64,000 nt of DNA from Octopus sinensis (lineage: Eukaryota): assembly GCF_006345805.1 (NCBI RefSeq), contig NW_021831847.1, positions 364,999-428,998 of the forward strand, given 5' to 3'. The notes beneath the pieces are model-generated. The model searched no databases. It was not told the origin of the DNA and saw nothing but the letters and a program-made list of their open reading frames with translations. The position numbers and the translations under genes are program-made. Positions 36,605-57,569 of this stretch are shown in pieces (within the stretch, counting starts at the first letter, position 1; every line of letters starts with the position of its first letter).

Positions 36605-37228
36605 TTATTCTAAAATTGGGTAAATATTGGAATGTCCGATCCCACACTGCATGTTCTTATTTCTTGCCATTTTTATATAACCGTTCTCTCCGTAGTAACG
36701 AGACCAACTGCCAATAAGACAGTCGATTGTACCTATTCTTGACCAACCAATACTTTTTTCCATTCTCAATCCCTTTACCAACGACCACTATAGCGTGATT
36801 TGTACGATTTTGACATTGAGGATTGTCGTGAACTCCTTAATTTAGAACATTCAAGATTACCTTTTTTATATAATTGAAATGATAAATCTAAAGCAGTGAT
36901 CGGTCCAATGTTGATTAGTGCTTTCATTAACTCAGATTCTGATGTGAATGTTTTGAATCCAGTCATTTTTACAACATTTTTCCTATATCTGCAAAACCAA
37001 CTCTAAAGATTGACATGAGATAGTACACCCTGGCTTCGTAAGGGTACATTTCTTCGGTGTCGATGCCACCATTTTTCATTATGTATTCAAATACACTTTT
37101 CTTGTGGCCCCCGGCACATCCGTCCGGTCCAATACAGTCGATTACATTTTGCTCGCTGAAGCTAACAAGTTTGCCGTATTTAATAGCGAATTGGCCTTCA
37201 AAACTTCCCAACTAAGAATTGATTAGTG
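36605..37228 (-). pseudogene. CTSL: Cathepsin L copy B: 5'-truncated duplicate (lacks prepro region and catalytic Cys exon)
   Basis: Starts inside the intron before LGSFEGQ; 9-nt deletion at GPIT(ASIS)ALD; most similar to copy C. Confidence 0.88.
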
Positions 37229-37325
37229 TTGGCCTTCAAAACTTCTAAGGAAGAGTTGTCTCCAATAAAAAATGATTTTAATAAATGATAGTAATGAATT
37301 TAAAGTGTGAATAGCTAAAAAATAT

Positions 37326-38499
37326 TTATTCTAAAATTGGGTAAATATTATAATCTCCGATCCCACACTGCATGTTCTTATTTCTTGCCATTTTTATATA
37401 ACCGTTCTCTCCGTAGTAACGAGACCAACTGCCAATAAGACGGTCGATTGTACCTATTCTTGACCAACCAATACTCTTTTCCATTCTCAACCCCATAACC
37501 AACGACCACTATAGCGTGATTTACACACTTTTTGCATTTAGTATTGTCGTGAACTCCTTGATTTAGAACATTCAAGATTACCTTTTTTATATAATCGAAA
37601 TGATAAATCTAAAGAACAGATATATGTAGTAATCGGTCCAATGTTGATTAGTGCTTTCATTAACTTAGATTCTGATGTGAATTTTTTGAATCCAGTCATT
37701 TTTACAACATTTTTCCTATATCTGCAAAACCAACTCTGAAGATTGACATGAGATAGTACACCCTGGCTTCGTAAGGGTACATTTCTTCGGTGTCGATGCC
37801 ACCATTTTTCATTATGTATTTAAAAACATTGTCTGCCAAGCCCCCGCCACATCCGTCCGGTCCAATACAGTCGATTACATTTTGCTCGCTGAAGCTAACA
37901 AGTTTGCCGTATTTAATAGCGAATTGGCCTTCAAAACTTCCCAGCTACAATTGATTAGTGTCTTATACAGCTCCAAATATATAACAGGATCCACAGCTTC
38001 CTTCACTCTTAACATGAGTGACAGCATTACGATCCACCCAACTAAAGTTGACTGGGACGTCATAATTATCTCCAAATTCGGGTTTGGAACGAGATTCTTG
38101 AAATTCGGTTAAATTGAGGTCAAAATGAGATTCTTTATGCATTTCTCCAAAGTCCTGAATAGTTAGAGAAGTGGTGAGATACCATGTCCGCGAACTGATT
38201 GATGCCTAGAGCATACGAAGTCTCCCTTCTTTCGTATTTCAAGTTTTGTTGATCAATTAGTTCGAGATTGCTTCGAAATATTTCCCGTCTTCGACTCTCT
38301 TCGTGTGGTGGATATTTTTTGTCTACGAAAGTAAGTATAATGAACAACTAAATGTTTTAAGATATTCATTCCATTTCAGATTAAACTGGTGACCCTGGGA
38401 GATATTGGAACGAATATTGTCTTTATACTTTATTGCTACTTTGAGTGGACTCGAGCCGAGACTCCTGACTATGATTGCAAAAACAACAAAATGTGTCAT
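37326..38499 (-). CDS. CTSL: Cathepsin L-like cysteine protease copy A, intact when spliced (6 introns)
   Basis: Signal peptide, ERFNIN ([20 protein letters not shown]), [41 protein letters not shown]|SW. Confidence 0.93.
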
Positions 38500-38929
38500 A
38501 AAGTTATAAATTGAATTTAACTTATTCAATTTTATTCGTCTTGCTTAATTTAATATTTTTAAATTGCAATTTAAATAAAACAAAATTCGACTAATTTTTT
38601 ACTTTTCATGGATCCTCCAATTCCTTTCGTTTTGATAAATTTTACTTTAATAACGTTACTTTATTGTTAATAAAAAGAAATTAACCATCCAACGTAAATT
38701 CAGGTTTGGGAGATCAACTGTCGATGTAATATAAGGAGATAGATGGATCTGTGCCATATGTTAAAAATTTGAAATGGTAACCACAATATTGGACATTGAT
38801 ATGAGCAGGGAATTTGACAGGATTCGTAGAGAAAATCTGAACTGATATACGATGTAGACTTTTTGTTAATTTAAATCTTTTTAAAATGGAAACAAGGAAA
38901 AAAGAGAAGTTAACTAAATTAGATGAGTC

Positions 38930-39900
38930 GCTTAGCGGATAGACAGGCAATTTCCACGTAATATCGCAAAAGATATCCGCTGAAAAAGCCAGCTCGTTTC
39001 ACGACTGTCGTGACTCCTCCTCGAGATGGTTAAACCAATCTCTGAGAGGAGTTGGAGCGCTTTGGTTGAGGCAAGGGCAGATGCAGACCCAGGACGAGAA
39101 GCGGAGTCAACCAGCGATGATGAGAAAAATGAGTCTAAGCAAGTAACATCCCACACGAGTGCCATTTCCTCCCTGAACGGAAATAAAGTCGACCCATCAG
39201 GGCGTTTTCCATTCCCACGGTCTAGTCCTATCGGTTCTAATATTGAGGGGAATCCAGCGGCGTTAGGCGCATGCTTTACAACATTATTTAATGAGGCGTG
39301 CCTGGAAATCCTGCCGGCACTGAGGCGACAAGAGAGAGGAGTTGTCCACATTTGCAATGGTGCGGCTGGCAAATCTCTATGCCAAGCCGTAAACAGATTC
39401 CGATGCGGACTGATTCGTTGTTCAGGAAAATACCAGCTGACGAGATCGATAACGCATTTAGCCAATCTGCCGAATGTGGCAGACAAGCACAATTAATACT
39501 TGCCAACTGAAGCTGGTCGGCGTGTGAGCGGATATCTTCAATTACGTGCGAACAATATATGTTGTCCCAGTTCCTTTGAACAGAAGAATGTCCGGGACTT
39601 TAAGTCCCTGAGAAACCCACTCGTTGACACCAGCCGCATATTCCAACAACTCGCACAGTTCAGAAAAGGGAAAAAGAACAGAGTAGACGAAATTAATGAA
39701 AGCGGACAACGATGATAGGTAAAACGGAAGGGATAAGGATAATGAATCATCACACGGGTCGGTACCACCATCGCCTACAATGTCCGCTAAGCTGCTGATA
39801 GCATCCGAGTCAGTTCGGATGCCGAAGCGTGCAATGCCTTTTGAGTGGACTACAGGTGGTACCGCCCAGCAAAACCTGGAGGGATGTAATCGAAGAACTT
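38930..39900 (-). mobile_element. CRE-clade element 3' fragment, degenerate
   Basis: CACLPHSADWLNAL..LRLG, CRLSAGRISRHASLN, GNGKRPDG..WDVTC, LFQRISFAILRGN. Confidence 0.85.
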
Positions 39901-55349: not shown

Positions 55350-55786
55350 TTTAGTTTTAGTAAATTTACTGTTGTGGTTTTGATCTCTCGTTTTTTGCAA
55401 CAACCCTTGTCGATTCTAACTTTCAAAAAATTTTCAGAATTGCTTGATTGCCACTTTAGGAGGGTTTTTTAAAGTACAACTGAACTTGTGAATTTTTGCC
55501 ATTTTACATTGATTAAATTTTTAAGACAGATTTCTTGCCCTGTCGCTGCCTTATAGGAAATCAAGTTTTCCGTTTTCTTATAAAATCTGTTGATTCCGCA
55601 CGCTGACTGCATTTAGTCCCGGAGAGAAAAAATAATCGAAAAAATAAATTTTCAAAATACTTGATTCAAAAATGAAAATAGTCTTTAAAATAATAATAAT
55701 CAATCTTATTGCAAAAACAGAGACAGTGACAGAAGTTCGACGTACCATGAAACGAGACGGCTTTCTGAGGAAACGTCTATTTGCGT

Positions 55787-56269
55787 CTATTGAAGCCATT
55801 TGTCAAGAATTAGATAATTCTTGCAATAATATTTCGGTTAATTTAGAATTATTGCTAATCTACTTATACAACAAAATCAAAGCACTTAATCAGAGCACTA
55901 AATAAAATTAACACTGAAAAACTAAGAGCAGAGACTGAGGTGAGAAGTCTCAAGGATAGTGAAGAAGATGTCTTACTGAGTCAACAGAGACTAGAATCTG
56001 CCTGAGTTGAGGGAGTGTCTGGAGATTTGTGACAAGTGTCGGACTGTGGCTGAATTGATGGACATTCCGGGGAATATATCCTAGGAAGAGTTGTGTAGAG
56101 TTATCCTGTGTGGTGTGAGTGGTAGGAGTTGGGTGGTTTGGGAGTCGTTAAAGATATGATTGCCGTGGAGAATCGTTTAGGCACTGAGAGATATGGTCAA
56201 GTCAGGCAGTGGTTGGATGTTGTTGAGGCAATTTATCGTTTGAGGATTATTGACTGTCTGAGCAATTAA
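55787..56269 (+). pseudogene. IMMT: Partial, internally deleted duplicate of the MIC60 3' region
   Basis: Matches about 35709-36479 with two large deletions and an in-frame TAG. Confidence 0.85.
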
Positions 56270-56394
56270 GTCTTAATAGTTTACTAATTATTTTAAAAAC
56301 TGTTAGAATTGAATATAGGAAAAATAGTATCCAATAAAAAATGGTTTTAATAAATGATAGTAATGAATTTAAAGTGTGAATAGCTAGAAAATAT

Positions 56395-57569
56395 TTATTC
56401 TAAAATTGGGTAAATATTGGAATGTCCGATCCCACACTGCATGTTCTTATTTCTTGCCATTTTTATATAACCGTTCTCTCCGTAGTAACGAGACCAACTG
56501 CCAATAAGACAGTCGATTGTACCTATTCTTGACCAACCAATACTCTTTTCCATTCTCAATCCCATAACCAACGACCACTATAGCGTGATTTGTACGATTT
56601 TGACATTGAGGATTGTCGTGAACTCCTTAATTCAGAACATTCAAAATTACCTTTTTTATAAAATTGAAATGATAAATCTAAAGCACTGATAGATGCAGTG
56701 ATCGGTCCAATGTTGATTAGTGCTTTCATTAACTCAGATTCTGATGTGAATGTTTTGAATCCAGTCATTTTTACAACATTTTTCCTATATCTGCAAAACC
56801 AACTCTAAAGATTGACATGAGATAGTACACCCTGGCTTCGTAAGGGTACATTTCTTCGGTGTCGATGCCACCATTTTTCATTATGTATTCAAATACACTC
56901 TTCTTTTGGCCCCCGGCACATCCGTCCGGTCCAATACAGTCGATTACATTTTGCTCGCTGAAGCTAACAAGTTTGCCGTATTTAATAGCGAATTGGCCTT
57001 CAAAACTTCCCAACTAAGAATTGATTAGTGTCTTATACAGCTCCAAATATATAACAGGATGCACAGTTTCCTTCACTCTTAACATGAGTGACAGCATTAC
57101 GATCCACCCAACTAAAGTTAACTGAAACGTCATAATTATCTCCAAATTCGGGCTTGGAACTAAATTCTTGAAATTCGGGTAAATTGAGGTCAAAATGAGA
57201 TTCTTTATGCATTTCTCCAAAGTCCTGAATAGTTAGAGAAGTGATGAGACACCATGTCCGCGAACTGATTGATGCCTAGAGCATACGAAGTCTCCCTTCT
57301 TTCGTATTTCAAGTTGTGTTGATCAATTAGTTCGAGATTGCTTCGAAATATTTCCCGTCTTCGACTCTCTTCGTGTGGTGGATATTTTTTGTCTACGAAA
57401 GTAAGTATAATGAACAACTAAATGTTTTAAGATATTCATTCCATTTCAGATTAAACTGGTGACCCTGGGAGATATTGGAACGAATATTGTCTTTATACTT
57501 TATTGCTACTTTGAGTGGACTCGAGCCGAGACTCCTGACTATGATTGCAAAAACAACAAAATGTGTCAT
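56395..57569 (-). CDS. CTSL: Cathepsin L-like cysteine protease copy C, intact when spliced (6 introns)
   Basis: Same exon structure as copy A; [31 protein letters not shown]|SW. Confidence 0.93.

Follow-up and report, generated by a model that had tools for sequence, protein, structure and literature searches.

How do two genes with nearly identical first exons come to encode cysteine peptidases that differ at almost every residue of a substrate-binding pocket? The question is raised by a 64,000-nucleotide (nt) stretch of contig NW_021831847.1 in the Octopus sinensis assembly GCF_006345805.1 (hereafter the window, meaning this whole stretch), whose minus strand carries three cathepsin-L-like units, the intact genes A and C and a fragment, B. 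Of the 339 residues encoded by each intact gene, 30 are not the same in A and C, with 26 of these in the 210-residue mature domain; the changes take in five of the six canonical positions of the S2 subsite. We suggest, with a probability of roughly 0.6, that A, C and fragment B form a small lineage-specific cathepsin-L-like family in which selection has kept the substrate clefts of the paralogues distinct.

Both intact genes are interrupted by six GT..AG introns of 24-28 nt each, which on splicing leave a reading frame of 1020 nt. All 12 splice sites are intact in A and in C, and the alignment of the products with human procathepsin L is free of gaps over every exon junction, which supports the gene models (Table 1). 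The products match Peptidase_C1 (PF00112; 3e-65 for A, 8e-65 for C) and, N-terminal of it, the I29 propeptide domain (PF08246; 5e-16 and 2e-17, respectively). As read from the translations, both propeptides contain a complete ERFNIN motif (E-x3-R-x3-F-x2-N-x3-I-x3-N) and the GNFD motif (G-x-N-x-F-x-D) in the form GINQFAD. The mature domains retain the catalytic residues Cys25, His159 and Asn175 (papain numbering), Trp177 and the six aligned cysteines of the three conserved disulfides (22-63, 56-95, 153-200), with no insertion relative to cathepsin L and no occluding loop. Identity with animal cathepsin L is 41-50% at the protein level, and a protein search found no database relatives more than 50% identical. 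We assign A and C to the cathepsin-L/ERFNIN subfamily of peptidase family C1A, with the qualification that Gln19 of the oxyanion hole, which belongs to the definition of this family, is Glu in both. Each likely encodes a signal peptide, and we infer that both products are active peptidases of secretory or lysosomal use.

Copy B had been listed in the initial annotation as a further paralogous gene, which it is not. It begins at a scrambled junction 115 nt past the stop codon of A, at exon 4, and has neither a prepro region nor the exon carrying Cys25. A 12-nt in-frame deletion has removed its residues 132-135, position 133 included, and the conserved GYG reads GKG, so B is probably a dead remnant. 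More speculatively, it might supply a cassette of alternative 3' exons for splicing to exon 3 of A. In A (37323-37329), B (36602-36608) and C (56392-56398), all on the minus strand, the TAA stop codon and a polyadenylation-type AATAAA hexamer overlap, which suggests that the transcript of A ends ahead of fragment B. No further cathepsin copies were found in the window by tblastn.

Table 1. Positions in the window of the cathepsin-L-like units, their pocket residues and changed patches (papain numbering), and the associated duplicated sequence.
Feature	Positions	Strand	Content	Basis
Copy A, cathepsin-L-like	38499-37326	minus	intact, 7 exons, 339 aa	spliced model, Pfam, alignment
Copy A, exons 1-4	38499-38349, 38322-38183, 38154-37969, 37944-37762	minus		spliced model
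Copy A, exons 5-7	37735-37582, 37556-37454, 37428-37326	minus		spliced model
Copy C	57569-56395	minus	intact, 7 exons as in A, 339 aa	spliced model, Pfam, alignment
Copy B	37211-36605	minus	5'-truncated fragment, exons 4-7 only	spliced model, alignment
S2 of A		minus	L67, A68, Y133, V157, A160, Y205	alignment
S2 of C		minus	Q67, K68 (and K69), S133, T157, A160, S205; also Ala23	alignment
S2 positions of B			H67, K68, 133 deleted, T157, S205; exon with position 23 absent	
Patch 67-70, A	37839-37828	minus	TTG GCA GAC AAT = L A D N	alignment
Patch 67-70, C	56897-56908	minus	Q K K S	alignment
Patch 67-70, B	37095-37106	minus	H K K S	alignment
Patch 132-136, A	37613-37627	minus	T Y I C S; holds S2 position 133	
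Patch 132-136, C	56682-56696	minus	A S I S A; holds S2 position 133	
Patch 152-157, A	37522-37542	minus	T K C K K C V; holds S2 position 157	
Patch 152-157, C	56591-56611	minus	P Q C Q N R T; holds S2 position 157	
Residues 204-205, A	37350-37355	minus	D Y; holds S2 position 205	
Residues 204-205, C	56419-56424	minus	H S; holds S2 position 205	
Glu19 codon, A	38002-38004	minus	GAA	alignment
Glu19 codon, C	57072-57074	minus	GAA	alignment
254-nt run identical in A and C	38247-38500; ~57317-57570	minus	ATG, exon 1, intron 1, most of exon 2	
Mitofilin/MIC60-like gene	35416-36479	plus	3' part	Pfam Mitofilin
Mitofilin 3' part and inter-gene spacer, duplicated with cathepsin	35707-36604; copy 55789-56394	plus		self-BLAST, identity gradient

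Residue numbers were assigned by aligning the spliced A, B and C proteins with human cathepsin L and with papain; C25, H159, N175, Q19 and Y67-P68-W69 of papain, and likewise V133, V157, A160 and S205, fell on their textbook numbers. The canonical S2 set comprises positions 67, 68, 133, 157, 160 and 205 (PMC9712828, and PMC3014944 citing Turk et al.), which correspond in the alignment to Leu69, Met70, Ala135, Met161, Gly164 and Ala214 of human cathepsin L. The residues listed by the initial annotation at 67/68, 133, 157 and 205, its papain numbering and its replacement of Gly23 (A) by Ala (C) are borne out, and the literature agrees that 67, 68, 133, 157 and 205 line S2. That the copies diverge at every S2 position holds for five of the six, Ala160 being common to A and C. 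The changes lie in compact patches, the densest of which, at residues 67-70, reads TTGGCAGACAAT in A (37839-37828) and CAAAAGAAGAGT in C (56908-56897), with 9 of 12 bases changed. Comparison with 117 cathepsin L homologues sets these residues in context. Q67, K68 and K69 of C are each found in 0/117, in keeping with the earlier remark that basic or polar S2 residues are unusual, and neither Y133 of A nor S133 of C occurs in any of them. A retains the family-typical L-x-D-N at 67-70, where B and C are derived; at positions 136, 142 and 152 it is C that is family-typical and A that is derived, and neither carries a common residue at 17 of the 30 positions where they differ. Derived cleft residues are thus found in A as well as in B and C, so that both lineages have changed. 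Copy A alone has additional cysteines at positions 135 (37616-37618) and 156 (37525-37527, both minus strand), in neighbouring cleft elements, and these might form an additional disulfide.

The changes are concentrated in the cleft. The hypergeometric probability of finding five of six S2 positions changed is P = 1.1e-4, and for the cleft as a whole, represented by 24 residues which we take to form it, 11 are changed against a background of 26/210 (P = 1.1e-5). Changed positions tend to be family-variable (Mann-Whitney P = 0.001), yet the enrichment persists after conditioning on column entropy (S2 P = 1.4e-4, cleft P = 4e-5). The nucleotide differences between A and C are clustered as well, with a variance/mean of 3.6 that 0 of 20,000 permutations matched, and no 12-nt window in 20,000 permutations attained the nine changes seen at residues 67-70; the clustered multi-nucleotide nonsynonymous changes described initially are therefore genuine. 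Their supposed setting of near-identical flanks and introns is not, as changed positions number 8/154 in the introns (5.2%), 10/194 in the 5' flank (5.2%) and 6/78 in the 3' flank (7.7%), compared with 44/1020 in the exons (4.3%). Only the block of exon 1, intron 1 and exon 2 is near-identical, with one difference in 317 nt, which makes Q76H the sole change in the 97 codons of exons 1-2. The claim of a near-identical prepro region is correct for these two exons but not for the rest of the propeptide, where the other three of its four replacements (T113P, S118F and R119S) fall within codons 113-119, nor for B, which has no prepro region.

Does this concentration reflect selection? The ratio of nonsynonymous to synonymous divergence (dN/dS, omega) was estimated pairwise by the Nei-Gojobori method, the available sequences being A, C and half of B. 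Between A and C omega is 0.72 for the whole gene, 0.70 for the mature domain and 0.77 for exons 4-7, and none of these values differs from 1. At the six S2 codons, the proportion of nonsynonymous sites that differ (pN) is 0.52, compared with a proportion of differing synonymous sites (pS) of 0.05 in the remaining mature domain (Fisher P = 3.5e-5), and it still exceeds the 16% divergence of the most diverged duplicated flank (P = 0.003). Replacement divergence at the pocket sites thus lies above the neutral level, as positive selection there would have it, and this site-specific excess is real, though the mosaic history of A and C described below could inflate it. When the mature domain was divided, after the data had been seen, into cleft loops and remainder, the remainder gave pN 0.011 and pS 0.033 (omega 0.31) and the loops pN 0.195 and pS 0.207, that is, about 20% divergence at both kinds of site. 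Because of this difference the scaffold looks constrained, whereas the loops have diverged at synonymous and replacement sites alike.

Several of these observations weigh against selection at the cleft. The gene-wide omega cannot be distinguished from neutrality, and the site-level evidence comes from a crude two-sequence test with gene conversion as a confounder. Exons 4-7 contain four pure synonymous changes, three of which (V199, I255 and C279) are no more than two codons away from a cleft residue that has been replaced, and such clustering of synonymous changes with replacement patches fits old or imported blocks as well as it fits selection. In addition, Glu19 of both copies and Ala23 of C occupy positions that are invariant in the 117 homologues, and catalytic competence is not assured. 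The patches may accordingly be read as a mutational mosaic that arose without selection, either through short conversion events importing blocks from divergent paralogues elsewhere or through multi-nucleotide mutation, the cleft location being incidental or a matter of weaker constraint. Nine changed bases among 12 adjacent ones against a background of about 5%, the position of the three synonymous changes and a mosaic identity that shows active conversion in the A/B/C family all agree with such a history. So does the finding that two of the six exon differences between B and C fall into one 9-nt patch, at codons 67 and 69 (B 37098-37106, C 56900-56908), even though B looks dead, which hints that this patch is mutationally unstable or repeatedly converted. 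We nevertheless think this explanation unlikely, as the window contains no donor sequence, the coverage of five of six S2 positions is improbable by chance even given column variability (P = 1.4e-4), and many of the changed columns (G23, M68, V132, D135, A136, L157) are at least 85% conserved in cathepsin L and thus not simply the freest sites.

Relaxed constraint, under which decaying proteins or weak or non-catalytic papain folds would keep the fold while the cleft drifts, strikes us as decidedly improbable. It would account for an overall omega of 0.7-0.8, and it gains from the plain degeneration of B and from the unusual residues of the intact copies: besides Glu19 in both and Ala23 in C, A and C share Y26, I27, G29, N158, Y181 and I207 relative to the 117 homologues, with W26Y, A27I, S29G, D158N and W181Y as departures at conserved positions. 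It is difficult to reconcile with an omega of about 0.3 outside the cleft and with the intact state, in both A and C, of Cys25, His159, Asn175, Trp177, the six disulfide cysteines, the ERFNIN and GNFD motifs and the splice sites. Nor need Glu19 abolish catalysis, for engineered papain Q19E reportedly keeps its activity. PMC6584820 mentions Glu19 and His19 mutants that catalyse an acid-assisted step. Selection might also be real and yet be directed at escape from host or endogenous inhibitors, cystatin-type or propeptide-like, and not at a new specificity. Changes are found at S1 (23, 64), S1' (136, 142) and S2' (21) too, on a surface that cystatin-type inhibitors also touch, and the replacements T113P, S118F and R119S (38093-38109 in A, 57163-57179 in C) flank an EFQ linker whose aligned counterpart in human procathepsin L is the segment that crosses the cleft. 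The window holds no inhibitor gene, however, and S2 is classically the determinant of P2 preference (PMC9712828), which leaves us highly sceptical of inhibitor escape as the target. The position of T113P, S118F and R119S on either side of this linker would also fit co-adaptation of propeptide and cleft.

Why, then, would paralogues that exchange sequence keep such different clefts? We believe that selection maintains two enzymes with different P2 preferences: gene conversion would have homogenised most of the sequence, leaving the prepro exons nearly alike and B and C 98-100% identical, while the cleft loops, mainly those of S2 but also those of S1, S3 and S1', stayed or became very different. 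The S2 pocket of A is predicted to be hydrophobic and aromatic, with L67, A68 and V157 and crowded by Tyr133 and Tyr205; that of C would be open, polar and positive, with Q67, K68 and K69 on its wall together with S133, T157 and S205. Since charged S2 residues admit charged or polar P2 residues in cathepsin B (Glu245) and cathepsin X (Asp76/His234) (PMC9712828), copy C might accept or prefer an acidic or polar P2 residue, its K68/K69 acting in a like manner. The charge of C is basic and sits on the 67-69 wall, whereas that of cathepsins B and X is acidic and sits at position 205, and A and C have neither an occluding loop nor a mini-loop. With signal peptides and propeptides that are nearly the same, the two enzymes would still share their folding, trafficking and activation.

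The two loci lie 19 kb apart on one contig with different neighbour genes, and for these reasons we reject the possibility that they are misassembled alleles. Over 1.45 kb C is 95.2% identical to A (self-BLAST), but this average conceals a mosaic. Between the loci identity is 84% at the distal end, then 91-94%, then 98-100% over B and C. A and C are about 95% identical apart from the 254-nt run at their 5' ends, which is matched in length by 0 of 20,000 permutations (permutation mean 96 nt) and looks like a gene-conversion tract. B is nearer to C than to A, differing from C by 1-2% and at six exon positions. Changes unique to one copy in the 3' half number 28 in exons and about five in non-coding sequence for A, three and one for B, and one and three for C, which makes A the long branch, or outlier, among the three. 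The mosaic of identity indicates gene conversion superimposed on an older duplication, so that no single divergence time can be assumed and the 'recent' of the positive selection proposed initially is unsafe; what stands of that proposal is the replacement excess at S2. We take locus 1, with A and B beside an intact mitofilin gene, to be the ancestral one, because locus 2 has only a decayed mitofilin piece (55789-56000 against 35707-36104, 84-97% identical, with two large deletions) that adjoins a tubulin-tyrosine-ligase-like (TTLL) gene; C would therefore have arisen by segmental duplication of about 2 kb. Copy B presumably goes back to a partial tandem duplication.

The window is eukaryotic with a guanine-plus-cytosine (GC) content of about 36-37% (about 36.7%), and its NDUFS3 is about 74% identical to bilaterian orthologues, a search with this protein returning no myxozoan or cnidarian top matches and no near-identical match. 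Among animals, only myxobolid myxozoans and Dicyema japonicum have been reported to possess introns shorter than 30 nt (PMC13644364), and the genome of D. japonicum has a GC content of 36.7% and is rich in long interspersed nuclear elements (LINEs; PMC6736024). Introns of 24-28 nt, the GC content, LINE fragments and a bilaterian NDUFS3 together make it likely that the contig derives from a dicyemid (Dicyema-like) genome. We rejected an origin from Schistosoma, for which there were no close protein matches, and one from a myxozoan, as the window carries the complex I gene NDUFS3, whose affinity is bilaterian, and yielded no Thelohanellus matches. Look-ups of 11 open reading frames of the window for identical entries gave no match, and the collections searched contained no transcript or protein of the source organism. 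A literature search found no paper on dicyemid cathepsins.

Position 19 is Gln in 117 of 117 cathepsin L homologues. An exhaustive HMMER search with the exon-3 open reading frame returned 106 matches with 101 active-site motifs, every one of which has Gln as well, so that Glu is absent from all 218 motifs compared; a word-indexed search for natural Glu19 relatives gave no candidates of any kind and is for this reason little informative. The papain mutant Gln19Glu has this exchange at the corresponding catalytic residue, with the difference that it was made in the laboratory, whereas in A and C Glu19 is the natural residue of both paralogues. Tentatively, and with considerable doubt, we raise the possibility of natural 'Glu19' cathepsins, probably dicyemid, in which a protonatable Glu perhaps ties catalysis to acid pH and whose paralogues have split into one with an aromatic pocket and one with a Lys-lined pocket choosing an acidic or polar P2. 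The latter choice, if true, would be a specificity not known from any cathepsin-L-type enzyme, and a natural Gln19-to-Glu oxyanion hole, if confirmed, would provide a ready-made test of the essentiality of Gln19.

The closest known parallel is found in Fasciola, where changes at S2 residues (67, 68, 133, 157, 158, 160, 205) and at cleft-flanking hotspots of cathepsin L have been read as positively selected (PMC3014944, PMC3071364, PMC5917446). Like FhCL1-5 of F. hepatica and F. gigantica, A and C would be lineage-specific ERFNIN-type cathepsin L duplicates of a parasite that differ at S2. The Fasciola enzymes, however, keep Gln19 and a hydrophobic S2, whereas A and C have Glu19 and polar/basic or Tyr-filled pockets; moreover, theirs is a large, expressed and biochemically characterised family, as opposed to two genes and a fragment known from sequence and mosaic through conversion. 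The vertebrate cathepsins L, V, S, K and F have the same fold, propeptide type and S2 logic (PMC9712828) at about 40% identity to A and C, but Glu19, Lys at 68/69 and Tyr or Ser at 133 are absent from all of them. S2-diverged duplicates are the textbook route by which parasites widen a digestive or invasive cathepsin repertoire, and the evolutionary pattern is in this sense an expected one. New compared with diversification of the Fasciola type would be pockets that are, as predicted, basic/polar or filled with Tyr, and an oxyanion hole with Glu19. If confirmed, Gln67, Lys68 and Lys69 and Tyr or Ser at 133, absent as they are from 117 relatives, would widen the specificity range of cathepsin-L-type enzymes. 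The A/C pair would also be a compact case in which gene conversion operates alongside diversifying pressure and, if confirmed, would give a first view of how proteases evolve in an extremely reduced, dicyemid-like parasite that takes up its food from host fluid.

Turning to the rest of the window, an Rfam scan and a scan for bacterial promoters and terminators gave nothing informative. Housekeeping genes occupy 43100-44350, 49100-50200, 50649-51140, 51519-52277, 52700-53275 and 54288-55223 between the two loci. NDUFS3, a tRNA-binding-domain protein, a bZIP factor and the TTLL gene were recognised by Pfam or database matches, and putative branched-chain aminotransferase-like and leucine-rich-repeat genes by eye from open reading frame translations. 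An RVT_1 fragment of a LINE-like element lies at 45620-46610, and a tandem array of 9.5 copies of a 94-nt unit with 94% matches at 7655-8551. Finally, an inverted repeat element pairs 9874-10778 with 38935-39736 at 75-80% identity, one of its copies lying directly upstream of copy A.

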